IMG/VR virus record: IMGVR_UViG_3300017987_000001 | Span: 62,001 to 126,000 of that record | Length of the DNA: 64,000 nt | Reading direction: 5' to 3' (one strand) | Part shown: piece after piece, positions 2,178 to 48,274 of the stretch | How positions within the stretch are numbered: position 1 is the stretch's first letter | Layout of the letters: every line of letters begins with the position of its first letter | Translations under genes and position numbers: made by a program | Notes under the pieces: model-generated | Databases searched by the model: none | Told to the model about the DNA's origin: nothing | What the model saw: the letters and a program-made list of their open reading frames with translations, nothing else

Positions 2178-2804
2178 TTACCGGAATCGGATCAGATACT
2201 GAGCGCCGATCTGGTATCCGTCTTCCTTCGGCACCGGGTCGAATCCATCATACGACCGGCTGAACAGCAGGTCGCTCGTGTATTGTGCAGGAGTCGGGGT
2301 GGCCGCCAGCGCAACGCCGTAGACCTTGCTGTTCGCGGCGTTGCTGAATGCCTTCCCATGCGTACCCTGCGTGCCAGACGTGATCGCGAAGAAGGTTGCC
2401 TGATTCCCGTCGTACTTGTCCGAGTCCGACGAGGAGAAGCCCGCCGGGATGACAAGCGGAACGCGCACGTAGTCCTTCGTCGCGCTCAGGTTCAGCGTGT
2501 CGAGGTAGTAGCTGATGTCCTCGTCTCGCTGCGGCGACGGGATCGTCGGTGCTCCCGCCGTATTCTCGTACTCGAAGTACATCGCTCCCGCTGCGTAGGT
2601 AACGTCCCCCGCGAGTGCGCGAGCGAGCACGTCTGCCCCCTGATACGGGATGAGGTTCTTCTGCTCGACGAGGTGCTTGATCTCCCCGGTCTGCTCGTGG
2701 AAGCTGAAGATTCTCCACCACGTCTCGACATCCTTGTCGAGGTGGATCAGTTCGATGCGCGCATCGAGCTGGGCCTTGATCACAGGGATCAGCTTGGGGT
2801 TCAT
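2178..2804 (-). CDS. Baseplate wedge/tail-collar-type protein (208 aa)
   Basis: KNLIPYQG..LA N-terminal pattern and LFSR...Y.I.F C-terminus resemble phage collar/wedge proteins; ATGA overlap with the upstream gene. Confidence 0.55.
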   Translation of the reverse strand: MNPKLIPVIKAQLDARIELIHLDKDVETWWRIFSFHEQTGEIKHLVEQKNLIPYQGADVLARALAGDVTYAAGAMYFEYENTAGAPTIPSPQRDEDISYYLDTLNLSATKDYVRVPLVIPAGFSSSDSDKYDGNQATFFAITSGTQGTHGKAFSNAANSKVYGVALAATPTPAQYTSDLLFSRSYDGFDPVPKEDGYQIGAQYLIRFR

Positions 2805-4393
2805 CGGCAGACCTCCGCTACTTTGAAGACACCGAGGACAACGTCCTCATAGGACGGGTCGCCCGCTGAAGCCTCGCTGTACTCGTCGAGGTTCTCGGCG
2901 TCCGGTATGATGCCATTGAAACGCTCGGTATCCTCAGATACACCCGGCGTCTCGTCGGAACCAGCCGTGGACAAATCAATCGTATCAGCAGACGGTGCTA
3001 TTTCAACGAAGATCAGCAGTGACGTGTGCGGCGGTACGACCGGCCGGATGTGGCGCAGGAACGCCAGTCCCGGAGCGTCAGAGTCGACCGCCGACGTGCG
3101 TATCTTCATGAACCACAGGTTGTTGCGCATGATCCGATCCATCGCGAACTCCAACGGATTGATCGTGCTGGGGAGATTCACCGGCAGCGGCTGCGTGGCC
3201 GGGTTGTCGCGCAGGTCGAGCAGCTCCGCGAGCGTTTCTTCGCCTGTCGCCAGTGCTACCTCCATCGCCTTCGCGAAGAAGAGATCGACGTCCGCCGGGT
3301 AGCCCTGAATACGGAACGTGACTACCGCCTTCCCCTCGGCATTGACGCCGCCGTACTCCACATCTACTTCACCGTTCTCGAAGACCAGCTCGGAGAAGTA
3401 GCCTCCCGACAGGTAGTTCTCACTAATCGAGATACCGGGCAGCTCGGAGTAATCGGGCGCGTTCCCGGCGCAGTCCACCACGGTGACGGCGTCGGTCAGC
3501 TCCTGTCCAGCGAAGAGCGTATCGCCGATGCTCACGATCACTTCGGCTTCGAGCGAGAACTCATAGACATGCTTGTCCGTAATCACGAGCTTTCGATCGA
3601 CCTCGGTGACGATATCCTCCACTGTCTCGGTCGGCTCAATGACGAACGGTACGCCGAGCATGGCCGATACCATCATCTGGATCGACTTCATGTTCGAACC
3701 GAACGCGTAGGCGTCCCAGAGTGCGTTGGTCAGTTCCTTGAAGAACTCCGTGGACTCGGCAACGAGATCGACAGCGAACGACCAGTGCTGGTAGATGTAC
3801 TCCTGATCCCACTTGCCCTTGAAGACCCACAGGCCGATCTCTTCGTCGACCAGCTCGCCTTCGTCGTTGTACACGTCACGCTTCGCCACGTAGCCACTCT
3901 CGAACGGATCCTCACGGAAGCGGAGCAGCTTGCGTTCCTTGTCGATGTCGTAGTCGACCCCGAACGTCCACGTCTTGCTCGGGTAGAGCACGCGGTTGTA
4001 GATGGCATACGGCATCTCGGTCAGCTCACCGAAGAAGTCATCCTCTGGCAGCGGGAACAGGAACTCCTCCGTCTGCGGGTCGCCATAGCGTGCTCCGCTT
4101 CCGTAGGTCAGGTTGTCCTGCCCATAGACACGGAAGACGTTGTCCTTGTCGCTGGCCTTGAGCACGAGGAGATACCAGTTCTCGGTGTGAAAGACCGGGG
4201 TAAGGTACCGGCTGATGAGCGCGACGGTCTCAAGATAGTCGTCGTGTGCCTGCTCCTGACGGTGTCCGACCGACCGCAGATGCGTGTACAGCTTGTCCCG
4301 GTCTTGGAAGTACCAGTACCAGAAGCTACCCAGTGCGGTGAGCAGCTGCTTGCCGTACTGATCTCCGGTCGGGTATGTGGTCGGTGCCGTCAT
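2801..4393 (-). CDS. Baseplate wedge subunit (P2 gpI/T4 gp7-like position, 530 aa)
   Basis: Follows the baseplate J-like gene; C-terminal IRPVVPPHT matches the 'xxPAHT' ending of gpI-like wedge proteins. Confidence 0.6.
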   Translation of the reverse strand: MTAPTTYPTGDQYGKQLLTALGSFWYWYFQDRDKLYTHLRSVGHRQEQAHDDYLETVALISRYLTPVFHTENWYLLVLKASDKDNVFRVYGQDNLTYGSGARYGDPQTEEFLFPLPEDDFFGELTEMPYAIYNRVLYPSKTWTFGVDYDIDKERKLLRFREDPFESGYVAKRDVYNDEGELVDEEIGLWVFKGKWDQEYIYQHWSFAVDLVAESTEFFKELTNALWDAYAFGSNMKSIQMMVSAMLGVPFVIEPTETVEDIVTEVDRKLVITDKHVYEFSLEAEVIVSIGDTLFAGQELTDAVTVVDCAGNAPDYSELPGISISENYLSGGYFSELVFENGEVDVEYGGVNAEGKAVVTFRIQGYPADVDLFFAKAMEVALATGEETLAELLDLRDNPATQPLPVNLPSTINPLEFAMDRIMRNNLWFMKIRTSAVDSDAPGLAFLRHIRPVVPPHTSLLIFVEIAPSADTIDLSTAGSDETPGVSEDTERFNGIIPDAENLDEYSEASAGDPSYEDVVLGVFKVAEVCR

Positions 4394-15829: not shown

Positions 15830-18505
15830 TTAGGAAGTCTGAATGTTGATAACGTACTCGTCCTTCAGCTTCTTGTCTTCCAGCGTCGGCGCTTCCTGCT
15901 CCTGCTTGTCGCGGTCCTTCGCCTGCCCCGTCGTGAAGTCGACGTTCTTGCTTGCCGAAGGATCTGCGTACTTGTAGAGGCTTTCCGTCTCCCAGCCCTC
16001 CTGCCCGGGGTGCGGGCGCGTCTTCGTGCTGCTCTCGGCTGCGTTGACCTCAGGCTCTTCCCACTTCTCCGTGTTCACGCTGAATGCTCGATACATCTGC
16101 TGCCATCGCGCTTCGATGACACGGAAGTCGTCGTCGATCTTGTACTGATCCTTGTTGCGGAAGCTGAAGCCAACCGCCTTATGCACGTCGGCATTGCCCT
16201 GACCGGAAGTGGAATCGTCGAGTGTGACATTGTCGAACTCGGCATAGAGCGTGCGCTTCGTCGTATTCGCCTCGGCATCGACGAAGCTGCCGCGCGGCGA
16301 GACGCCCGGACCTGAGCCACCGCCCGTACCGTTGTGGATGCTCGTGCTCGACATACCATTGGCGGACATGGCGCCTTGACAACTCATCGAGCCATCGGCC
16401 ATCACGTTGCCCTTGGTATGCACGCCGAACTGCGTCTCCAGCAAGCCACCGCCCTTGGAGCCATTCCAGACACCGACGGCTCCATTGATATCGAAGACGC
16501 TGACGACCATGATCGCCGATGAGGTATCCATCGCAAACTGGGATGGGGTTGCCGTACTGCTTCGATCGTTGCCGACAAGCACGCCGTAGCGTTCGGTCGC
16601 CTCGTTGCCGATCTGCTTACCGGCAATCGTGGTGCGCCCGAGTCCGGAACTGATCTCGACGATGCCGTCGGCTTCCTTCGATGCGCCCGCGAAGACACGC
16701 CAATCGCTCCAGATATCGATCGCGGCATCCTTGCACTTCAGGATGATGCCCTTCGACTCGATATCCGTACCCTGCTTGCCGTCCCACTCGGATGCTGCCG
16801 GGTCCGCCTTCGAGCGGCACTCCAGCAGGATGTTGCCCTTGTCACCATCGCCCGCATAGACGTGAACGTTGTTCTCGCCCTTGATACGTACGTCCTTCTT
16901 CGACGCGGTGATCTCGTTGCACCAGCCAGCGCGACTGATAATATCGCGCGGCGCCCACGTGATCGCGCTGCGGCCCGGGCGCGTGAACACGTCACCCTGA
17001 CAGGTGATTTCGATATTGCCACCACTCATGACAATCTGCGAGCCGTAGCCGTCTTCGAGAACGATCGAGCCGTCGTCGAGCATGTGGAAACTGGAGCGCG
17101 TCTTGTAGTAGCGAACGGCGTGACCTTCACGCTTATCGATCGTGACGTCGGCGTACTTCGGGAGCTTCTTGAAGGGCTTGAAGTCCATCTTCGGCTTGTA
17201 CAGCGCTTCGTCGATGACATTGTCTTCATCCGACGCGCTGAACTTGATAGCAGACGCTTCAGCGGTCTGCCAGTCCTCCTTGTGTGCATCGGCCGCCTGC
17301 AACCCGAACTTGCCGAAGAGGTACTCTTCCTGATCCCACAGCTCGTTGTTCCGAGTCATGGGATTCTCGGTATCGGACCACTCGTACGGCTTCTTCTCCT
17401 GTGGATCACCGCCCGACCCATAGAAGTTCGCAGCCTTGTAGTTCGGCTCGGGGTCAGCGGCGTGATCGCCCTTCGGGTCGTCCGGGTCGCGCTTCTGCCA
17501 CGGGACCGGAAGCATGAGCGACTTCTCTAGAATGATCTGCTTGGCAGAGCGAACGGCGTACGTACCGTCGAGCATCTTATGGATTTCGAGCAACCCACGG
17601 AAGTCCTGCGGATCATCCTGCTTCGCTACTCCTTCAGCCTCTGGCGGCGTGATTACGATCTGCTCACGCGACACGTCTCCGAGATACCCGCGCAGGTGCT
17701 GACTCCGGAAGACCATGACCTGCTTCTTCTCTTTCGGCTCGTAGTACGCCTTCTCCGAGCCGCGCGTGAGTCCGCCGTCATCTCCTTCGTTCTTCTCGAA
17801 GATTTCTTCGCCCGTGGCATATGAGCCCATCGACTCCCACATGAAGGGGGTGCCGCGTAGGATCTCGCTGTACTCGCCTTCATCATCGAAGGCAAAGCGC
17901 TCGGTCGCAGCGGTCCACTGCTGGGTATTCCATCCAAAGATGCGCAGCAGATCATCACCCCAGAACGCCTCGATCTTCGCCAGATCTGACGCGCGCATCG
18001 TTGTCATCAGCTTACCGAGGAAGAGCGCGACGCCGAGTTCGTTGATCTGCCCCCAGTCGCCGGGGAGTGTATCTGCTGGACGAGAGATACTCGCGTTGAC
18101 GAGCCGGTTATCCTCGTTCTCGTACGGCGTTTGGTGCGTCTTGTCCTCTGGAGCACCGGCACGCGAACGAAGCACCCACGAGTCAGGCACCTGATTACGT
18201 GGATCGTTTGCAAGCGGGGGAAGCGCCTTGATTATGAATCCGTAGGAGAAGCCTTCGGGAAAGAAGCCAAGCACTTCGTCGCCGGGAAGGATCTGCGTAG
18301 CTTCGGTCGCCCCGATCGGCGTACAACTACTGCTTGTCAGTAAAAGCGCCTGCCGCGTATCACCAAATGGCGTACGCACCTTGTACGCACCGGTATACGC
18401 GAAAGCATCGTGGACTGTGCAGATTACGAATGGGTCGACAGGGACAGAGCCACTCTCGGTAGCTGCGGATTTCTCTTCCGCAGTTTGCTTCTTCTTGTCT
18501 GTCAT
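15830..18505 (-). CDS. Central spike/hub protein, gp5/VgrG-like (891 aa)
   Basis: Start at ATG 18505 (GAGG RBS); N-terminal OB-fold-like ILPGDEVLG..GFII, later beta-helix repeats (DDGSIVLEDGYGSQIVMSGGNIEIT). Confidence 0.65.
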   Translation of the reverse strand: MTDKKKQTAEEKSAATESGSVPVDPFVICTVHDAFAYTGAYKVRTPFGDTRQALLLTSSSCTPIGATEATQILPGDEVLGFFPEGFSYGFIIKALPPLANDPRNQVPDSWVLRSRAGAPEDKTHQTPYENEDNRLVNASISRPADTLPGDWGQINELGVALFLGKLMTTMRASDLAKIEAFWGDDLLRIFGWNTQQWTAATERFAFDDEGEYSEILRGTPFMWESMGSYATGEEIFEKNEGDDGGLTRGSEKAYYEPKEKKQVMVFRSQHLRGYLGDVSREQIVITPPEAEGVAKQDDPQDFRGLLEIHKMLDGTYAVRSAKQIILEKSLMLPVPWQKRDPDDPKGDHAADPEPNYKAANFYGSGGDPQEKKPYEWSDTENPMTRNNELWDQEEYLFGKFGLQAADAHKEDWQTAEASAIKFSASDEDNVIDEALYKPKMDFKPFKKLPKYADVTIDKREGHAVRYYKTRSSFHMLDDGSIVLEDGYGSQIVMSGGNIEITCQGDVFTRPGRSAITWAPRDIISRAGWCNEITASKKDVRIKGENNVHVYAGDGDKGNILLECRSKADPAASEWDGKQGTDIESKGIILKCKDAAIDIWSDWRVFAGASKEADGIVEISSGLGRTTIAGKQIGNEATERYGVLVGNDRSSTATPSQFAMDTSSAIMVVSVFDINGAVGVWNGSKGGGLLETQFGVHTKGNVMADGSMSCQGAMSANGMSSTSIHNGTGGGSGPGVSPRGSFVDAEANTTKRTLYAEFDNVTLDDSTSGQGNADVHKAVGFSFRNKDQYKIDDDFRVIEARWQQMYRAFSVNTEKWEEPEVNAAESSTKTRPHPGQEGWETESLYKYADPSASKNVDFTTGQAKDRDKQEQEAPTLEDKKLKDEYVINIQTS

Positions 18506-18521
18506 CACAACCTCTACTATT

Positions 18522-18564
18522 GCTATTAACAAGCCCGCCCGGGTCGGTGACCGAGGCGGGCTTG
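18522..18564 (-). terminator. Probable intrinsic terminator after the tail tube gene
   Basis: CAAGCCCGCC...GGCGGGCTTG stem followed by TTAAT. Confidence 0.6.
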
Positions 18565-18609
18565 CCACGCACGAGTGCCATTCGTACGAATGCTCGTGTC
18601 AGATACGCC

Positions 18610-19065
18610 TTACGCTTGACCCTGCTCGACGCGCGCCACCAGCAAGTTCACGCTCTCGTTGATGACCATGTCCTGCGCGTTGATGGAGTACGCGACACGC
18701 GTGACGACGCAGCCCGTCGCTTTGATCTGGCCCGCCTCGGTACCGCAGGAGCCCTTCACCCAGAGCGTGATATGGTTGGACTGAATGTTGCACACGTCAC
18801 CGTACTGGGTCAGGAACTCCCCGACGAGCGGCTTCGGGCCAACAACGCGAGCCATCGTCATGCCGCCCTCTTGGTGGCCGGAGACGAAGTACTGCTTGTC
18901 GGTGCCGATCTCCCACAGGCGCGTGATGTTCTGCTGGTAGGTGATACCTAGCTGTTGCACCACGAGCGACTGGGACGAGGCGCCGACGAACAGTAGCTCA
19001 GTGTCATCTGCACTGAACGGTTCGCCGACAGTCGCAGTTCGGCCGAGAATGTCAGGCTGGGGCAT
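18610..19065 (-). CDS. Tail tube protein (151 aa)
   Basis: YQQNITRLWEIGT..YFVSG motif, tube size, strong AAGGAG RBS, own promoter and terminator, downstream of the sheath gene. Confidence 0.8.
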   Translation of the reverse strand: MPQPDILGRTATVGEPFSADDTELLFVGASSQSLVVQQLGITYQQNITRLWEIGTDKQYFVSGHQEGGMTMARVVGPKPLVGEFLTQYGDVCNIQSNHITLWVKGSCGTEAGQIKATGCVVTRVAYSINAQDMVINESVNLLVARVEQGQA

Positions 19066-19120
19066 GTCCTACTCCTTCTTCTGGTAACGAGTCTGGTCCT
19101 ACATGGTCCTGCACATGATG

Positions 19121-19150
19121 ATTGTAGCGGATGGTTGCCCACTCCGTCAA
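19121..19150 (-). promoter_or_regulatory. Sigma70-like promoter TTGACG-N18-TACAAT for the tube gene
   Basis: Near-consensus hexamers in intergenic DNA. Confidence 0.6.
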
Positions 19151-19169
19151 CTGCAATGTAGCTGATAGC

Positions 19170-19214
19170 AAAAAGATGGGAGAACCGGCCGGGCGCCCGC
19201 GAGGGCGCCCGACC
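19170..19214 (-). terminator. Probable terminator closing the moron
   Basis: GGTCGGGCGCCC-TCGC-GGGCGCCCGGCC hairpin with TCTTTTT downstream. Confidence 0.55.
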
Positions 19215-19233
19215 AGCTCCGGTGGGATGGGGA

Positions 19234-19680
19234 CTACTTCTTGGTGTTGACCACGTTAAGCTCGGAGCTGCTGTCCCACAGCCACCCCTTCTCGACGCGG
19301 TACAGCTTGCCATTGGCGAGGCTATACGTGATGTCCTTGTCGGCGACGCGGTAGTAGAAGCTCGGCTGTTCACCGGCCGATTCCACGACACTGACGAGGT
19401 ACTCGACGCCCGGCTCCAAGCGAGCCTGCGTCTTCACGCCGTTCGCGTGCATGATCACGACGTTCGGCGCGGACGCCGACGCGGGGCCGCTGACGTACGA
19501 CGCGATGACGATGGTGACCACGAGCATCAGCAGCGCGACAACGACAGTCGCGGCCAGCTTCGCGCCACCCGCGAAGGTCTCGACGAGGAAGCCGGTGATG
19601 CGGCTCCACAGCGTCTTCTTCTCGACCTCGGTCTTCACGGCATCGTCTACGGCCTTCGTCTCTTCTTTCTTCTCGGCCAT
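19234..19680 (-). CDS. Single-pass membrane protein (148 aa)
   Basis: ATG 19680 with AGGAG RBS; LAATVVVALLMLVVTIVIASYV transmembrane helix followed by a small beta domain. Confidence 0.75.
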   Translation of the reverse strand: MAEKKEETKAVDDAVKTEVEKKTLWSRITGFLVETFAGGAKLAATVVVALLMLVVTIVIASYVSGPASASAPNVVIMHANGVKTQARLEPGVEYLVSVVESAGEQPSFYYRVADKDITYSLANGKLYRVEKGWLWDSSSELNVVNTKK

Positions 19681-19694
19681 GGTAACGTCTCCTA

Positions 19695-19973
19695 TGCGAG
19701 CGCGTGGATGTGTATAGGGCAGCGCCGATGCTCGCGAGTCGGTCTGCCCCGTATGAACGCCGCACGACATCCATGTCGAGCGGACGGAGTTTGTGCGTGG
19801 ATGTATCTTTGGGAGGAGAGTCCGCTAGCCTCGCCATCCACGCAACGAAGCTAGCAGTGTTCGACCGAGTCGAACTACTCTCCTCCCAAGCTCTGAATTT
19901 CCGGGAAGTACAGAGGGTGAGGTACTGCATAGTTGTAATGCAAGGTTCGGTGCCGATAGCACCTCCACCCTCC
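19695..19973 (-). ncRNA. Candidate multi-domain structured RNA (leader/riboswitch-like or standalone)
   Basis: Several long complementary stems (13-bp TTGGGAGGAGAGT/ACTCTCCTCCCAA and others); several mismatches read as G-U pairs on the minus strand; loop-tail complementarity. Confidence 0.55.
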
Positions 19974-20003
19974 ATTTAATGCTACCGCAAAGTGGTGATT
20001 TAT

Positions 20004-20063
20004 TAAGCAGGCGAGGCGGCTGCGCGGAAGGCCCAGTTGGACCCACCGCGCAGACGCCTCGCC
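20004..20063 (-). terminator. Long GC stem-loop after the 105-aa gene
   Basis: GGCGAGGCGTCTGCGCGG...CCGCGCAGCCGCCTCGCC followed by TGCTTAAT. Confidence 0.5.
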
Positions 20064-20083
20064 GAGACGCCTGCGGATACCGG

Positions 20084-20401
20084 CTACTTCTTGCCGTTAC
20101 CGTTCCCGTTGCCGAGCTTGCCTTCGACCCGGCCGAGCGAGATCTTGATCGACTTGATCTCGTCATCGATCCTTTGGATCTCCCGCTCGCGCAGCCCGCG
20201 ATCGCGCGCGGTCTCCTGCACCATCCGCTCGCGCTGTTCGATCGCGTCGGCGTGGCGCTGCTTCTCCGCCTCGTACACCGCCAGCTGTCCGCGCAGTCCC
20301 GCCGCCTTGTGCTGCAGCTCGCGTCGGACCGTCGGCCCCATGCGCTTCGCCTTCTTCGGCTTCTCCGGCGATGGCGGCGCTTTCGTCTTCGTCTTCGGCA
20401 T
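20084..20401 (-). CDS. Small basic coiled-coil protein (105 aa)
   Basis: GAGGGGG RBS; Lys/Pro-rich N-terminus and a heptad-like charged helix. Confidence 0.7.
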   Translation of the reverse strand: MPKTKTKAPPSPEKPKKAKRMGPTVRRELQHKAAGLRGQLAVYEAEKQRHADAIEQRERMVQETARDRGLREREIQRIDDEIKSIKISLGRVEGKLGNGNGNGKK

Positions 20402-20458
20402 TGTGCCCCCCTCTCAAAGGTGGATGTTGGGCTGTGGATTTTTGGACGCGTCCAACAA

Positions 20459-21214
20459 TCAGTCAAGTCGTTGAAGCGTCCACTTGAACTGTCCCCGTTC
20501 GATCCCGATCAGCGCATCGGAACCGGTCTCCTTCATATCCATTTCGACCTGCTGGGTCTTGAACCGCACCCGATCAGGCCACATCACCGACCACGTACTC
20601 TTCCACAGCACGGAGCCGCTGGCATCCGAAACGTGGAGAGACTTGTCGGCATTGAAGGAGAAGATGGACCCGGTGTCGGCCTTCTTCCACTTGCCGACAT
20701 ACTTGAGAAACGCGAGCTTCCGCGCCGAGCTGAGTCCGGACGTTGGAGTCTCTTCCAGTTCGATCACGGCGTCCTTCTCGACCGTGATCGTCTTTCGGAT
20801 ATCCTTGAACCCGTCCTTCGCCAGTATCAGCTGGTGCCTGCCCTTCGGGAGCTTGAGCGTTCCGGGAACCTCGCCGATCCGTCCAATGGGCCTGACGGAA
20901 ACTACAGCCCATCCGGTCGCGTCCTCCGAGATCTCCTTGAACAGGAGATCGATGGAGTGCCGTACCGGGGCGAGCTTCAGCTTCAGCACCACGAGACGAG
21001 GTCCGACTTCGAACTCGTGCTTCAGCGGTTCCTGTCCGTCCTTCTTGAGCACCAGCGTGTGACTGCCCTCGGCGAGGGTTAATCTGACCGGCGTCTTCCC
21101 AACGGACTTCTCCTCATGCACGACCTCCGCACCGGACGGTGTCGAGGAGACGATCACCGTCGCGGCGTGTACCGGCGCTGCGAGAAGCAGCAAAGCGATC
21201 GCTATGGCTTTCAT
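20459..21214 (-). CDS. Secreted PEGA-domain protein (251 aa)
   Basis: Signal peptide MKAIAIALLLLAAPVHA; VSSTPSGAEV..VGKTP..LAEGSHTLVLKKDG is a PEGA repeat, with a second degenerate repeat; AAGGAG RBS. Confidence 0.85.
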   Translation of the reverse strand: MKAIAIALLLLAAPVHAATVIVSSTPSGAEVVHEEKSVGKTPVRLTLAEGSHTLVLKKDGQEPLKHEFEVGPRLVVLKLKLAPVRHSIDLLFKEISEDATGWAVVSVRPIGRIGEVPGTLKLPKGRHQLILAKDGFKDIRKTITVEKDAVIELEETPTSGLSSARKLAFLKYVGKWKKADTGSIFSFNADKSLHVSDASGSVLWKSTWSVMWPDRVRFKTQQVEMDMKETGSDALIGIERGQFKWTLQRLD

Positions 21215-21284
21215 GGTGATCTCCTTTCCATAGCAATAATCCTCCATCAAATGGTGCCCCGTTTATGGCTCTAATTAAGTATAC

Positions 21285-21318
21285 AAGAAACCCCCCGGCA
21301 ACCGAAGTCACCGGGGGG
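21285..21318 (-). terminator. Rho-independent terminator after the sheath gene
   Basis: CCCCCCGGTGAC-TTCG-GTTGCCGGGGGG followed by TTTCTT. Confidence 0.9.
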
Positions 21319-21362
21319 CATCGAGGAGGAAGCGACCACTGGCGTAGTCGCTCCGCACGGCG

Positions 21363-24179
21363 CTAGATGACGAGGTGAAGCTCGATGTTGTTCAGCGGGT
21401 ACGGCACTTCGAGATTCACCGTCGCGAGCACGCGGTCCTTAAGCACCGGGTGCTGTTCGAGCTGCACGATCTCGTAGGAGAGAACCTGCGGCCCGATGAT
21501 GTCCGTGACGACATTGTTGTTGAAGAAGTCGAGCACGGACAGGATCTCACCGCGAATGATGTTGATCATGATCGGGGTCACGTTACCGCGTCCGATGTAG
21601 ACCGCGAGTCGGCGGAGGAACGTATAGCTGATGCTGTCCACGTTCGTCGTGACCGACTGCTCACGGCGGTTGAGGTCCAGATTGTCCGTCGACAACTGAT
21701 GCCGCGTGTACACGTCGCCGTCGTTCGGATCCTGCGTCACGATCCAGATCCCGGCTTCGGCCAGCGTGTTCAGCTGCGGCTCGTTGAAGAACTCCGTGGT
21801 CCGGCTGACGTCGTCGAACCCGAGGATCTCCACGTTCGTCAGCGGGCGATGAGGCAGCGACGCGGAGCGCAGCCCTGCGAGTGCGGCGCACAGGTAGTAG
21901 CCCGCGAACGTCTCACCGGCATTGCTGATCTCGTCCGGCCATACGAGGTAGACGCGGCGGCTGTTGAACGTACCAGCGTTCGTCGCGTACTCGGTCGCAA
22001 TACCGGTGCGCGACAGGTTGCGCCAGATCTCGATCTTGGACGGCACGGTGATCGGGGCCGACGGGCCGCTGACGAGGCGAAGCTCCTCCTCGTTCAGCAC
22101 GGCGTCGATCACGTACTCGCTGTACGTGATGTTGCCGAAGCCGTCGTCCTGATACTGCGCGCGAACGATGTCACCCGCAGCCACCTCCTGATCGAGGCTC
22201 GTCAGGAAGTGCTGACCCTCTGCGCGGACCAGCGTGTACTGCGTGCCGGAGGTGTCCGGGTCGTCCGTGATGGTCGCGAGGACCGGATCACAGTCGCCCG
22301 CACTCAGCTCTTCGGAGCAGGTGTAGACGCCCTTCTCCGTCGCGGCTTCGAGGTTGAACCAGCCGATGCGCCAGCGGCCCTTCTCGGCACTGGACATCGC
22401 CTCAATATGAGCCTGCACCAGCTGAAGCACTTCCTGCTCCTGCGTCATCGGCGTGAGCGAATAGACGTCGTCGCGACCTTCGAGAACTTCGAGAGCCGCC
22501 GCCCAGTCCTCCAACTCGATCGGGCTGGAAGCACACACCGCGATGTACTTCACCGGTGTACCGGCTGAGTTCTGCAGCGCCTTGTAGACGCCGAAGACCA
22601 GCGGGTTGTCCGGGTCGATCACGGCACCCTGACCGAAGTTGTCGGAGTTGAGTTCCGACACGTCGGAGACGGAGTTGACCTCACCGCAGAACGTCGGCAG
22701 GAGGTCGCGGTGCTCGACATAGACCTTACCGTCCTTCACCGGCAGCGCAGTGAGAACACCGCTGCAGGTGTAGCTGGCATCGTACGCGACGATGCCGGAC
22801 TTCATCGTGATCTCCGTCTCGCTCTGCTCCCAGTTCACGAGCGGCGCGAAGCCGGTGCGCTCCTCGGAGACCTGAATGTCCTTCTTGATGTAGAAGGTCA
22901 CGTTGAGGCTCGGCGGCACCTCGGAGCTGCTGGAGCTGGTGCCGTCGTTGCAGATCCCGCGCAGTTCGAGCGGGAGCGGCGTCGCAAGCACGACGGTCTT
23001 GACGGCGCCATCCGACTCCGCCTCTACCTCGATGAGGTAGCGGTCGCCCTTGCACAGGCCGTTGGCAGCCGACGTGAATTTGATCGTCAGCCCCTGCGAG
23101 CCGATCGACACCGGCGTATTGAGCGCGGACACGACCGTCGGCGCGCTCTGGTCGACGCCCGTCGTGGTCGTCGCCTGAATGCGCGCATCGCCGAAGTCGC
23201 CTCCCTCGACGACCTCGACAACGTACGTCGTGTCGGCCGTACCGAGGTAGACCCCACCGCTGGCCGAGACCGGTGCATCGAAGTCCTGACGAACGGTGAC
23301 AACCCACGTCTGCCCGGCAACGAAGTCATCCGGATCGACGCCCGGACCAGCGCTCGACGAGCCGCCGTTATCGAACGTGACAGTCAGGCCGCGCGCCCCG
23401 ATGGCTGTCGGGGAGCCGAACGCCTGCGGCGTGATTGCCGCGTCGTCATCTGTACCACTCGACGAGGTGACCTTGAGCACGGCAGTCTCGGCGTCGCCGC
23501 CGGAGCCACTGCCGATGCATTCGATCGTGTACGTGTCTTCGATGACGCCATCCTCACGACCGTCGAAGCTGGCGCCGTTGGTCCCCGTGATCTCGACAGA
23601 GTTGGTGTCACCAGCGGTCTGGCTGTCAGTGACGTTCGCCGTCTGCGAGTTCTTGTTGACGGTGTCCGACTCGGCTGGCTGAATGACCGCCGGGATCGGG
23701 TCGGGGATGAAGCCGAGAATCTGCGACTGCAGCGACTGCGGCTCGCCGCAGGAGCTTGCGAGGATGTCGAGCACGTCGCCGACGGCTACGTCGCGATCGC
23801 AGAAGACGCCGCTGCGATTGTAGCCATTCTTCGTCTGTAGGACGAGCGTATCGAAGCGTACTCGGTTGCGGTAGCCGCTGACTACCTGCCCATCGCCGGT
23901 CGTCTCTTCGTAATACTCAAGAAGAGCATCGTCGATGTACACTTTCGTGTAGTCCTCATCGACAACGCCACCGGCGGGACGGTTCGGCCATAGGTATGCC
24001 GTATCCGTGTCCGGGATGTAGTGATCGGTCACCTTGATGAGGGGCTTCTCGTCCTCATCGGAGTACCGGTTCAGCGCATAGTGAGGACCGATGATGCACG
24101 CGCGCAGCGGGTCCGTGAGCGCTGTCGGCAGGATCGAGAACTCCTGATACACCAATGCCTGCGGGACAACATATGCCAT
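21363..24179 (-). CDS. Contractile tail sheath protein (938 aa)
   Basis: MAYVVPQALVYQEF start (ATG 24179, AAGGAG RBS); C-terminal QLNTLAEAGIWIV..YTRHQLST..VPYPLNNIELHL sheath signature. Confidence 0.9.
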   Translation of the reverse strand: MAYVVPQALVYQEFSILPTALTDPLRACIIGPHYALNRYSDEDEKPLIKVTDHYIPDTDTAYLWPNRPAGGVVDEDYTKVYIDDALLEYYEETTGDGQVVSGYRNRVRFDTLVLQTKNGYNRSGVFCDRDVAVGDVLDILASSCGEPQSLQSQILGFIPDPIPAVIQPAESDTVNKNSQTANVTDSQTAGDTNSVEITGTNGASFDGREDGVIEDTYTIECIGSGSGGDAETAVLKVTSSSGTDDDAAITPQAFGSPTAIGARGLTVTFDNGGSSSAGPGVDPDDFVAGQTWVVTVRQDFDAPVSASGGVYLGTADTTYVVEVVEGGDFGDARIQATTTTGVDQSAPTVVSALNTPVSIGSQGLTIKFTSAANGLCKGDRYLIEVEAESDGAVKTVVLATPLPLELRGICNDGTSSSSSEVPPSLNVTFYIKKDIQVSEERTGFAPLVNWEQSETEITMKSGIVAYDASYTCSGVLTALPVKDGKVYVEHRDLLPTFCGEVNSVSDVSELNSDNFGQGAVIDPDNPLVFGVYKALQNSAGTPVKYIAVCASSPIELEDWAAALEVLEGRDDVYSLTPMTQEQEVLQLVQAHIEAMSSAEKGRWRIGWFNLEAATEKGVYTCSEELSAGDCDPVLATITDDPDTSGTQYTLVRAEGQHFLTSLDQEVAAGDIVRAQYQDDGFGNITYSEYVIDAVLNEEELRLVSGPSAPITVPSKIEIWRNLSRTGIATEYATNAGTFNSRRVYLVWPDEISNAGETFAGYYLCAALAGLRSASLPHRPLTNVEILGFDDVSRTTEFFNEPQLNTLAEAGIWIVTQDPNDGDVYTRHQLSTDNLDLNRREQSVTTNVDSISYTFLRRLAVYIGRGNVTPIMINIIRGEILSVLDFFNNNVVTDIIGPQVLSYEIVQLEQHPVLKDRVLATVNLEVPYPLNNIELHLVI

Positions 24180-24181
24180 GA

Positions 24182-24925
24182 CTAGTCTCCTTCGGTTCCA
24201 GTCGCTCGAAGATCGATGGCGAGCGTCTTGAGCCACGGCGCGTCCGGCACGATGCGCCACGTCTCCAGATAGGCCCAACCAAGGACTACCGCTGCTACGA
24301 AGTGCTGATCGTATTCCTCAATGCGGTTCACATCGGACATCTCGGTCGTCTCAAGACGATGGAGCTTGAGATCCTTACGGATCGCCGGGCCGAACTGGAC
24401 CAGCTCCCGAAAGACCTCGTAACCGAGAACTTCGGTCTCCGCACCGGTACGCCCGATGCAGAAGATCGTGTGACTGCCCAAGACGCCGATCGTGTGATAC
24501 TCGCCACGAAGCGTCGTGAGCGACCCGTCTTCCTCTTTACCGAGGCCGGACGTCATACCGTGGTTGATCCCGAGCTTCTGCGTGCGCAGCGGATTGCGCT
24601 TGATGTAGATCGCGATCCGCTTGCCCAGTATCGCGGGATCCCACTTGTAGACGGGCGCGATGAGGATTCCTGTTTCTAGTAGTCCTTCAGATGTGTCTTC
24701 AGGCTGGAGCTTGACGATGTTGTCTTTGAGTGCTTCGTCTTCGATATAGTTAGGTGTCGAAAAATGGTTCTGAAGGATCCTAAGTATGGCTCCTGTGAGG
24801 ATGTTCGGCGTGTGGCCAGTCGAGCATAGGCTGCTGAACTCTTGTAGGTCGACAAGAGTCGGCCCAGCTAGGGGGCTGGGAGCAGGCGCGGGAGTAGTGC
24901 AGTCGCTTATGTTGGCTTCGGCCAC
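24182..24925 (-). CDS. Tail terminator/completion protein (247 aa)
   Basis: Lies between the neck genes and the sheath; alpha/beta pattern with C-terminal WAYLETW. Confidence 0.55.
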   Translation of the reverse strand: MAEANISDCTTPAPAPSPLAGPTLVDLQEFSSLCSTGHTPNILTGAILRILQNHFSTPNYIEDEALKDNIVKLQPEDTSEGLLETGILIAPVYKWDPAILGKRIAIYIKRNPLRTQKLGINHGMTSGLGKEEDGSLTTLRGEYHTIGVLGSHTIFCIGRTGAETEVLGYEVFRELVQFGPAIRKDLKLHRLETTEMSDVNRIEEYDQHFVAAVVLGWAYLETWRIVPDAPWLKTLAIDLRATGTEGD

Positions 24926-47692: not shown

Positions 47693-47739
47693 GCTGGGTT
47701 CAAGCAGGTGCTCTACTGGACCTCTACCCGAACCCAGCG
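47693..47739 (-). promoter_or_regulatory. 5' leader stem-loop of the capsid gene
   Basis: GCTGGGTTCGGGT...GCTTGAACCCAGC pairs using G-U on the coding strand. Confidence 0.5.
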
Positions 47740-47758
47740 CCCTTTCACCCAGCGACGA

Positions 47759-48274
47759 TTATACCGGCTGATAGACCGGCCAGAACGCGAGGAACTTGAT
47801 GTTCGCGTTGTGCTCGCTGTCCGACTGTCCCGAGGACACGACGCCGACGATCGCATCGACGCCGAGCGTCCCCTTCTTCAACTTACCGACGTCGGCGGGC
47901 GTCACGCCACCGTCGTCGACGGTAAGCAGGTCGTTCGGCGCGTAGGTATCCGCGACGAACTCGGTCGACTGCAGCTCGTACGCACCGATCGCGACGAGGC
48001 CCGACCCCTTCTCTCCCGAGATGTTGCCTACGTCCGACCGAACGTCGAAGTCGGTGTAGTTCTGGAAGAGGAAGATCGCCATCGCGCTCGACGCGTTCAG
48101 GCCCATTACGAACTTACCGTTCGCATCGAGGCTCAGAACACGACCGGCGTACGCGTACGTCGTCTCGCCGCTCGCGTACTCCGCCGTGTAGTCCACGGCG
48201 TAGGGCGACGGCCAACCCTTGCGGGGGTTGAGTTCATGATCAAACATCTGTCCCGGTGTGAATGTACCCGGCAT
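47759..48274 (-). CDS. Head decoration/cement protein (171 aa)
   Basis: Beta-tulip-like pattern (AGRVLSLD..YAPNDLLT..GKL..IVGVV) immediately before the capsid gene. Confidence 0.65.
   Translation of the reverse strand: MPGTFTPGQMFDHELNPRKGWPSPYAVDYTAEYASGETTYAYAGRVLSLDANGKFVMGLNASSAMAIFLFQNYTDFDVRSDVGNISGEKGSGLVAIGAYELQSTEFVADTYAPNDLLTVDDGGVTPADVGKLKKGTLGVDAIVGVVSSGQSDSEHNANIKFLAFWPVYQPV

Follow-up and report, generated by a model that had tools for sequence, protein, structure and literature searches.

Does the minus-strand stretch at positions 19,695 to 19,973, predicted from sequence alone to be a highly structured RNA of about 300 nt with a switchable pseudoknot next to a ribosome-binding site, really carry these features, and if so, what kind of element is it? 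The window, the 64,000-nt stretch of DNA that we analysed, is bases 62001-126000 of a 207,857-bp jumbo-phage contig from IMG/VR with direct terminal repeats. The observation holds, because every stem and repeat of the original prediction is present on the minus strand at the stated coordinates and is far beyond chance. Its interpretation is only partly supported, since our data indicate a non-coding, structured, cis-linked leader of the gene for a 148-aa membrane protein, with a covarying loop/site pseudoknot next to the ribosome-binding site and no Rfam match, but they support neither a riboswitch nor a multimerising RNA. The region between the stop of an upstream 105-aa ORF (20084-20086) and the start codon of the 148-aa ORF, together with that ORF and the terminator-like hairpin behind it, contains the following parts, in the order in which they would be transcribed.

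20010-20063, minus strand: long GC-rich inverted repeat with 26-nt arms, after the stop of the 105-aa ORF; it is terminator-like and abuts the -35 box.
19979-20007, minus strand: promoter-like box, CTTAAT (20002-20007), 17-nt spacer and TAGCAT (19979-19984), with a predicted start at about 19972-19973, exactly at the 5' end of stem P1.
19947-19984, minus strand: the only block inside the variable island that is conserved at the nucleotide level (89% identical to the relative L145, described below), comprising the -10 box and the first ~26 nt of the predicted RNA (GGAGGnTGGAGGTGCTATCnGCACCGA); the word GGTGCTATC also occurs in the related loci L072 and L150.
19913-19972, minus strand: domain 1, a predicted 5'-terminal stem P1 (19961-19972 with 19913-19923) enclosing two small hairpins (19949-19963 and 19925-19943).
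19809-19889, minus strand: predicted three-way junction with the perfect 13-bp closing stem P2 (19877-19889 with 19809-19821), hairpin A (19859-19875) and hairpin B (19824-19855; loop 19834-19845, TTGCGTGGATGG).
19794-19803, minus strand: acceptor site 1 (CATCCACGCA), 5 nt after P2, complementary to the hairpin-B loop (10 bp, -18.8 kcal/mol).
19717-19787, minus strand: two spacer hairpins, C at 19758-19787, which holds ATGGATG, and D at 19717-19750; L145 has two unrelated hairpins in the same place.
19702-19710, minus strand: acceptor site 2 (CATCCACGC), 8 nt before the Shine-Dalgarno (SD) sequence, complementary to the same loop (9-10 bp, -18.1 kcal/mol).
19678-19693, minus strand: SD AGGAG (19689-19693) and the ATG start codon (19678-19680).
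19234-19680, minus strand: cargo gene for a 148-aa protein with one predicted membrane helix and no family assignment.
19181-19220, minus strand: intrinsic-terminator-like hairpin with a T-run that closes the cassette.

The loop word TGCGTGGATG (19835-19844) is complementary to site 1 at 10 of 10 positions and to site 2 at 9 of 9. The word CATCCACGC or its complement occurs four times in the 64-kb window against an expectation of 1.1, and three of these occurrences lie inside this 150-nt stretch; there are only five in the whole 208-kb genome. Stretches of 300-341 nt across the element fold with MFE z-scores of -3.9 to -4.9 against dinucleotide shuffles, and none of 100-200 shuffles was as stable. 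For the window alone, however, the sense and antisense strands fold equally well. An identical sequence occurs on independent contigs and in four DNA runs, so it is not an assembly artefact. Comparison with Rfam 15, one of the checks proposed with the original prediction, gave no hit at gathering threshold in the window, and an E-value scan of 19600-20120 gave only chance-level hits, all outside the element or far below threshold. No tRNA or tmRNA genes were found in the window.

The genes around the element run on the minus strand. The tail sheath gene (21363-24278, assigned by PHROG) is followed by a terminator, a gene for a PEGA-domain protein, the gene for a 105-aa coiled-coil protein, the long GC-rich hairpin, the element, the 148-aa gene and its terminator, and then genes for a 151-aa protein, which is tube-like by position, and a 912-aa protein. 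In most of about 140 related loci the sheath gene is followed directly by the 151-aa gene, and only the closest relatives carry 2-4 kb of variable genes between them. Therefore, the element lies in a hyperplastic island. BLASTN and nhmmer searches with the element against 144 related loci found only self copies, and BLASTN against INPHARED phages found none. The 148-aa protein has almost no homologues, and the contig of one homologue starts at the gene, so that no leader was recovered. The closest sheath relative (91%), a 7,745-bp JGI contig (sample 3300042731), has a 417-nt gap in the right place.

One relative, L145, has the same architecture in the same genomic place. Its sheath is 90% and its 151-aa protein 94% identical to those of the window, whereas the island proteins are only 34-42% identical and two of them are in a different order. 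A 374-nt gap in L145 follows the PEGA gene and a small ORF and precedes a 139-aa gene, which is an orthologue of the 148-aa gene (36% identity, E 4e-21). This gap folds with a z-score of -10.8. It contains the same promoter box and conserved 5' block, a long P1, a three-way junction with a purine-rich closing stem, a small hairpin A, a hairpin B whose loop pairs with a word just after the junction and with a second word about 7 nt before the SD, two spacer hairpins in between, and two extra hairpin modules (H1 and H2) that the window lacks. A MAFFT alignment of the two leaders misaligned beyond the first 60 nt, and helices were therefore compared in a register set by hand from the junction. 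P1 has 9 pairs the same, 1 one-sided change, 1 double change and none broken; P2 has 8 the same, no one-sided change, 4 double changes and 1 broken terminal pair; hairpin B has 6 the same, 1 one-sided change, 3 double changes and none broken. There are thus 8 double, compensatory-type changes across three helices, and no internal pair is broken. The loop and its sites have changed together: the window has UGCGUGGAUG with CAUCCACGCA, and L145 has CGGAUGUG with CACAUCCG, and UGUGGAU with AUCCACA. Cognate loop/site duplexes are -13.5 to -18.8 kcal/mol, whereas the cross-combinations of window and L145 are -7.9 and -9.6. Other copies of the L145 type are identical apart from one SNP, so only two independent sequences carry the full architecture.

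The leader is non-coding. No peptide is conserved in any frame of the leader in any locus, and a 201-aa ORF at 19370-19975 has a GC3 of 0.50, against 0.85-0.90 for neighbouring real genes. A box CTAAAx-N17-TA(G/C)(C/T)AT precedes the leaders in the window, in L145 and in the related loci L065 (twice), L067 (twice), L072 (twice), L073, L075 and L150, always on the gene-sense strand. The window's own genome has three distinct sites (four overlapping pattern matches) against about 0.7 matches in shuffles. The start predicted from this box coincides with the first base of P1, and in relatives a hairpin also follows the box directly, although this is a consensus argument and not a mapped start.

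The core of the element, a GC-rich hairpin whose loop is complementary to sites abutting the SD, recurs in related jumbo-phage loci. Their leaders are built of exchangeable perfect hairpins and end in a GC-rich hairpin with a GUGGAUG-type loop, followed by one or two copies of CAUCCAC and then AAGGAG and ATG. L081 has three such leaders before three different genes, L065, L134 and L075 carry it too, and L072 and L150 have GUGGGUGA with UCACCCAC instead. A word-independent descriptor, requiring a stem of at least 10 bp and a loop complement of at least 7 nt within 32 nt 5' of an SD plus start codon, was run over 121 non-redundant loci. It found 16 cases on the sense strand, 1 on the antisense strand and 0-3 in block shuffles, including further word families in more distant phages such as UGUGGCG with CGCCACA and CGUAAG with CUUACG. 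A covariance model of the hairpin that did not include the pseudoknot aligned seven modules. In this alignment 9 of 11 hairpin pairs have changes on both sides and the hairpin is 100% paired, while the unmodelled loop/site helix is 91.5% paired with an A-U to G-C exchange. The covariation score is 0.574 against 0.228 in shuffles (0 of 500) and at most 0.153 when the 3' partner is slid; these statistics across modules are not corrected for shared ancestry. Covariance model R1 found only close modules, and the window hairpin scored E = 2.7. The sense strand folds more stably than the antisense strand in 7 of 8 leaders.

The device also occurs outside jumbo phages. A scan of IMG/VR for the bare pattern GTGGATG...CATCCAC...ATCCAC gave about the number of hits expected by chance, but 18 distinct hits have the complete module, with a 12-15-bp hairpin, 2-5 sites and an SD, and the variant core GTGGGTG/CACCCAC gave 13 more. 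As both scans fixed the core words, only the flanks and the choice between cores count as covariation there. The base next to the searched core in the loop is Watson-Crick complementary to the base next to the core in 30 of 44 site copies, with three pair types (G-C, C-G and U-A; binomial p against 0.25 of 2e-9, not corrected for relatedness). Dozens of actinophage-like contigs carry the device. In these contigs, of 65-71% GC and 5-125 kb, the upstream gene encodes a major tail protein and ends 22-27 nt before the hairpin, and the downstream gene encodes a tail assembly chaperone or, in another set, a glycosyltransferase. Their tail proteins resemble those of Microbacterium, Arthrobacter and Mycobacterium phages. 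BLAST of the modules against cultured phages gave only chance hits, but direct inspection of the gap between the major tail protein and chaperone genes in two cultured phages showed the device in both. Arthrobacter phage RootBeer has a 16-bp hairpin with loop UCGAUGGGU, then ACCCAUC twice and ACCCAU once more, then UAGGAG, and Microbacterium phage Min1 has loop UGCUAUCGGGUCG, then three ACCCGA, then AAGGAG. At least five unrelated loop/site word pairs therefore keep complementarity. Over 42 distinct modules the median stem length is 14 bp and the median loop length about 10 nt, 37 modules have at least two upstream sites, the last site ends a median of 2.5 nt before the SD, and 11 modules have another copy between the SD and the start codon. 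Rfam found nothing in nine module-bearing loci. IMG/VR scans for the 5'-domain word and for the H1-H2 hairpin word gave no hits, and a scan of genome contigs for the H1 hairpin word gave over 120 scattered single hits in unrelated high-GC genomes that look like chance matches.

With moderate confidence, we read the element as the roughly 290-nt 5' leader of a self-contained accessory cassette (promoter, leader, 148-aa membrane protein, terminator) in the hypervariable island between the tail-sheath and tail-tube genes. Its functional core would be one member of a widespread phage RNA device, in which a G/U-rich loop on a GC-rich hairpin base-pairs with one of two or more direct-repeat C/A-rich acceptor sites just 5' of the SD of the next gene to form a pseudoknot. 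What the sequences establish is that the complementary parts are present, that the stems and the loop/site pairing are conserved with compensatory changes, that the position next to an SD is conserved, that the region is non-coding and that a conserved promoter box lies upstream. Transcription, the 5' end, the fold itself and every functional statement are inferred from sequence alone. The pseudoknot may place a bulky folded domain at the ribosome-binding region and so set the translation yield of the downstream gene. We lean towards damping, because the SD is strong and not masked, so that there is nothing to unmask; because in the siphovirus-type relatives the device separates the abundant major tail protein from the low-copy tail assembly chaperone; because sites abut or even follow the SD; and because a 14-bp hairpin docked there should hinder 30S binding. 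However, the modelled unpaired probability of the SD is 0.48 in the free state, 0.44 with the site 1 pseudoknot and 0.42 with the site 2 pseudoknot, so any effect on initiation, whatever its sign, must be steric or tertiary. The alternative acceptor sites might give conformers with different effects. In this view the site next to the junction would form first during transcription, is isoenergetic with the SD-proximal site, and could act as a decoy that sets the fraction of repressed molecules. The switchable character proposed in the original prediction remains possible, and site duplication is a family trait. The 5'-terminal stem and the compaction of single-stranded linkers probably also protect the mRNA.

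A bolder reading, which we regard as tentative, is that the loop-to-repeat pseudoknot is a distinct, widespread and so far unnamed class of phage cis-regulatory RNA, in which a hairpin behind an abundant tail gene pairs through its loop with tandem acceptor sites around the SD of the next gene. It would fix expression ratios post-transcriptionally, for example of major tail protein against chaperone or of sheath against accessory genes, with the number and spacing of acceptor sites as a tunable dial, and in the jumbo-phage version the three-way-junction fold with a decoy site would make a true two-state switch. Literature searches for a prior description of the device found none in the collection covered, although this does not prove that none exists. 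If the reading holds, one short and easily recognised RNA device explains a recurrent but unannotated feature of phage tail-gene regions, in uncultivated jumbo phages and in cultured Arthrobacter and Microbacterium phages. It would be a compact, sequence-programmable way to set translation ratios, since any complementary word pair seems to work and copy number and spacing vary, which makes it directly testable in tractable hosts and potentially useful as a synthetic-biology part. It also gives annotators a marker for cassette boundaries in hypervariable islands of jumbo phages.

The alternative that survives best, although we consider it unlikely as the sole explanation, is an element of mRNA processing and stability. 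The perfect hairpins would be nuclease barriers, RNase III-type processing sites, or terminator/attenuator hairpins behind a highly expressed tail gene, and the pseudoknot would hide the single-stranded linker from endonucleases. The stem at the predicted start site, the 5' hairpins behind the same promoter box in relatives, the hairpin position shortly after the major tail protein stop codon, where terminators and stabilisers usually sit, the 12-17-bp stems that are nearly all Watson-Crick, and the lack of a modelled effect on SD accessibility all fit this view. Stability alone, however, does not explain why the acceptor sites always abut the SD and are sometimes repeated between the SD and the start codon, and most hairpins lack a U-tract. 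The two explanations are not exclusive.

A DNA-level element is very unlikely. The repeated words could be operator sites for a DNA-binding regulator (stoperator-like), or the cassettes could be recombination substrates that shuffle accessory genes, like the PeSL cassettes (PMC2839356). There are direct repeats plus one inverted copy of a 7-10-bp word, island gene content and order differ between close relatives, a terminator-plus-promoter composite lies at 19979-20063, and leaders are repeated 2-3 times per island in L081 and L065. But the inverted copy is always in the loop of a long hairpin, the direct copies are always between it and an SD on the sense strand, unrelated word pairs keep complementarity with covarying flanks, and sense strands mostly fold better. 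A role in recombination could coexist with the RNA function but does not explain these features. A genome-wide translation signal or promoter word was also rejected, because the words are local to the element.

The ligand-sensing riboswitch, the main reading of the original prediction, is similarly improbable. A long structured leader with a three-way junction, a pseudoknot near the ribosome-binding site, two alternative pairings and no known family match would suit it. However, we found no sign of a ligand pocket, as junction and unpaired residues differ between the window and L145, and the only conserved blocks are the promoter with the first ~26 nt of the RNA, the loop/site words and the SD. 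Leaders are mosaics of exchangeable hairpins, with H1 and H2 present in L145, L065 and L081 but not in the window. The same device precedes unrelated cargo genes, namely a membrane protein, a STIV B116-like protein, tail chaperones and glycosyltransferases. There is no internal terminator and almost no modelled change in SD masking. The other alternative in the original prediction, a free-standing trans-acting or multimerising RNA (a pRNA-like ring, a sponge for a GGA-binding protein such as CsrA, or an antisense regulator), is the least likely, because despite a compact three-way junction, loops with GGAUG that resemble CsrA-type GGA loops and a window hairpin C that reads ACAUGGAUGU, no terminator separates the structure from the gene, variant loops lack GGA (GUGGGUG, UCGGGU, UGUGGCG), no pair of mutually complementary loops exists, the complement of the loop is always in cis just before an SD, and the word is not enriched elsewhere in the genome.

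The closest working analogue is the activator pseudoknot of the IncI-alpha (ColIb-P9 repZ), IncB and IncL/M plasmid rep mRNAs (PMC4705826). There, a distal hairpin loop (GGCG) pairs with CGCC immediately upstream of the SD of the regulated gene, pseudoknot formation decides translation, and an antisense RNA that competes for the loop acts as the switch. The pairing of a loop with a pre-SD word is thus already known, and the present device shares it, in the window and family-wide. The other defining features differ. In the plasmids the SD is weak, the GUG start is masked by a stable local structure that the pseudoknot opens, and termination of a leader peptide triggers pairing. In the window the SD is a strong AGGAG with an AUG that is not masked, the leader has no conserved ORF, the competitor would be a second cis site, and a consensus scan found no promoter-like site on the opposite strand in 18500-21500.

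The start-associated sequences and extended SAS of Cluster K mycobacteriophages (PMC3203893) are a phage precedent for conserved words tied to the translation starts of a subset of genes. They have one orientation, about half are preceded by an imperfect inverted repeat with a short spacer, and their as yet unknown function is suspected to be translational. The SAS is a single 13-bp word of different sequence that contains the RBS itself, and no loop-to-site complementarity or tandem acceptor sites are reported. The PeSL promoter/stem-loop cassettes of T4-type phages (PMC2839356, PMC4122927) are small, repeated regulatory cassettes concentrated in hyperplastic regions that hold non-essential genes, and are associated with gene shuffling between close relatives. 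They are early-promoter/terminator units of about 50-70 bp acting at the DNA and transcription level, with no long leader and no loop/SD-proximal pairing. At our locus the terminator-like repeat at 20010-20063 abuts the promoter box and island content differs between relatives, with only three distinct promoter-box sites in the window's genome. The phi29 pRNA is also a structured phage RNA with a three-way junction and functional loops, but it is a free RNA of the packaging motor that multimerises through two mutually complementary loops, whereas here the loop of hairpin A is UCG and only hairpin B has a long loop. In the exoribonuclease-resistant RNA (xrRNA) of flaviviruses, the apical loop of one arm of a three-way junction pairs with the single strand just 3' of the junction. 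The xrRNA fold blocks 5'-3' exonuclease. The three-way junction and the loop-to-3'-tail pairing are present in the window and in L145, but the defining 5'-end/junction pseudoknot and ring of the xrRNA were not identified in our element, and most members of the device family have no three-way junction at all. In the window, P2 (13 bp) and hairpin B (10-12 bp) have matching lengths, so the loop can reach the 3' tail.

In the window, a 10-bp stem (ATTGCTATGG/CCATAGCGAT) at 21198-21237 on the minus strand presents the SD and ATG of the PEGA-domain gene in its 20-nt loop. Therefore, the real start of this gene is probably the ATG at about 21214, which gives a signal-peptide-like N terminus (MKAIAIALLL...), and not the TTG at 21250. 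At 20404-20440 on the minus strand, two CCAC words (AUCCAC and ACAUCCAC) lie just before the SD-like GAGAGGGG of the 105-aa ORF, without an obvious partner hairpin. This may be a degenerate copy of the acceptor sites. The GC3 of the long ORFs at 19370-19975 and 18948-19391, both on the minus strand, which overlap the leader and real genes, was that of non-coding sequence (0.50-0.57). These are spurious high-GC ORFs.

In the related jumbo-phage locus L081, three consecutive leaders at 2330-3945 share the hairpin modules H1 (GGCCGUCCCGAUGACGGCC) and H2, the GUGGAUG hairpin and tandem ACAUCCAC. They precede three unrelated small genes, one of which is STIV B116-like. H1 and H2 are nearly identical in L081 and in two other related loci, L065 and L145, although the proteins are diverged. 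More distant jumbo-phage relatives have terminator-like hairpins whose loops (UGUGGCGG, CGUAAG, ACAGGU) are complementary to the word just before the SD of the next gene, at other genome positions. These hairpins were found at L044:1545, L050:1602, L054:995, L061:1561 and L063:1654, near 2640 in L033-L035 and L057, and at L007:8820. In the case of L007, the hairpin is the sheath terminator before the tube gene.

In L072, an ORF at 3660-4350, which is HNH-endonuclease-like as judged only by eye from the DNA, lies directly after the sheath gene and in front of the promoter and leader. Other islands hold a radical SAM gene (L150:10211-11092) and a sigma-70 region-4-like protein, the latter supported by a faint hit only (L146:8839-9987). 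Outside the window, at about 47700-48140 of G000:C1 on the minus strand, a gene behind one of the three promoter-like boxes reads, again by eye only, like a Ro60/TROVE-type protein. Such genes usually have a Y-RNA-like partner nearby.

The 11-nt word GGTGCTATCGG belongs to the conserved 5' hairpin of the window (19949-19963), and it also forms the start of the pseudoknot loop in Microbacterium phage Min1 (L404:2345-2365). The GGTGCTATC part of this word is also present in L072, L145 and L150. It may be coincidence or a shared recognition word.
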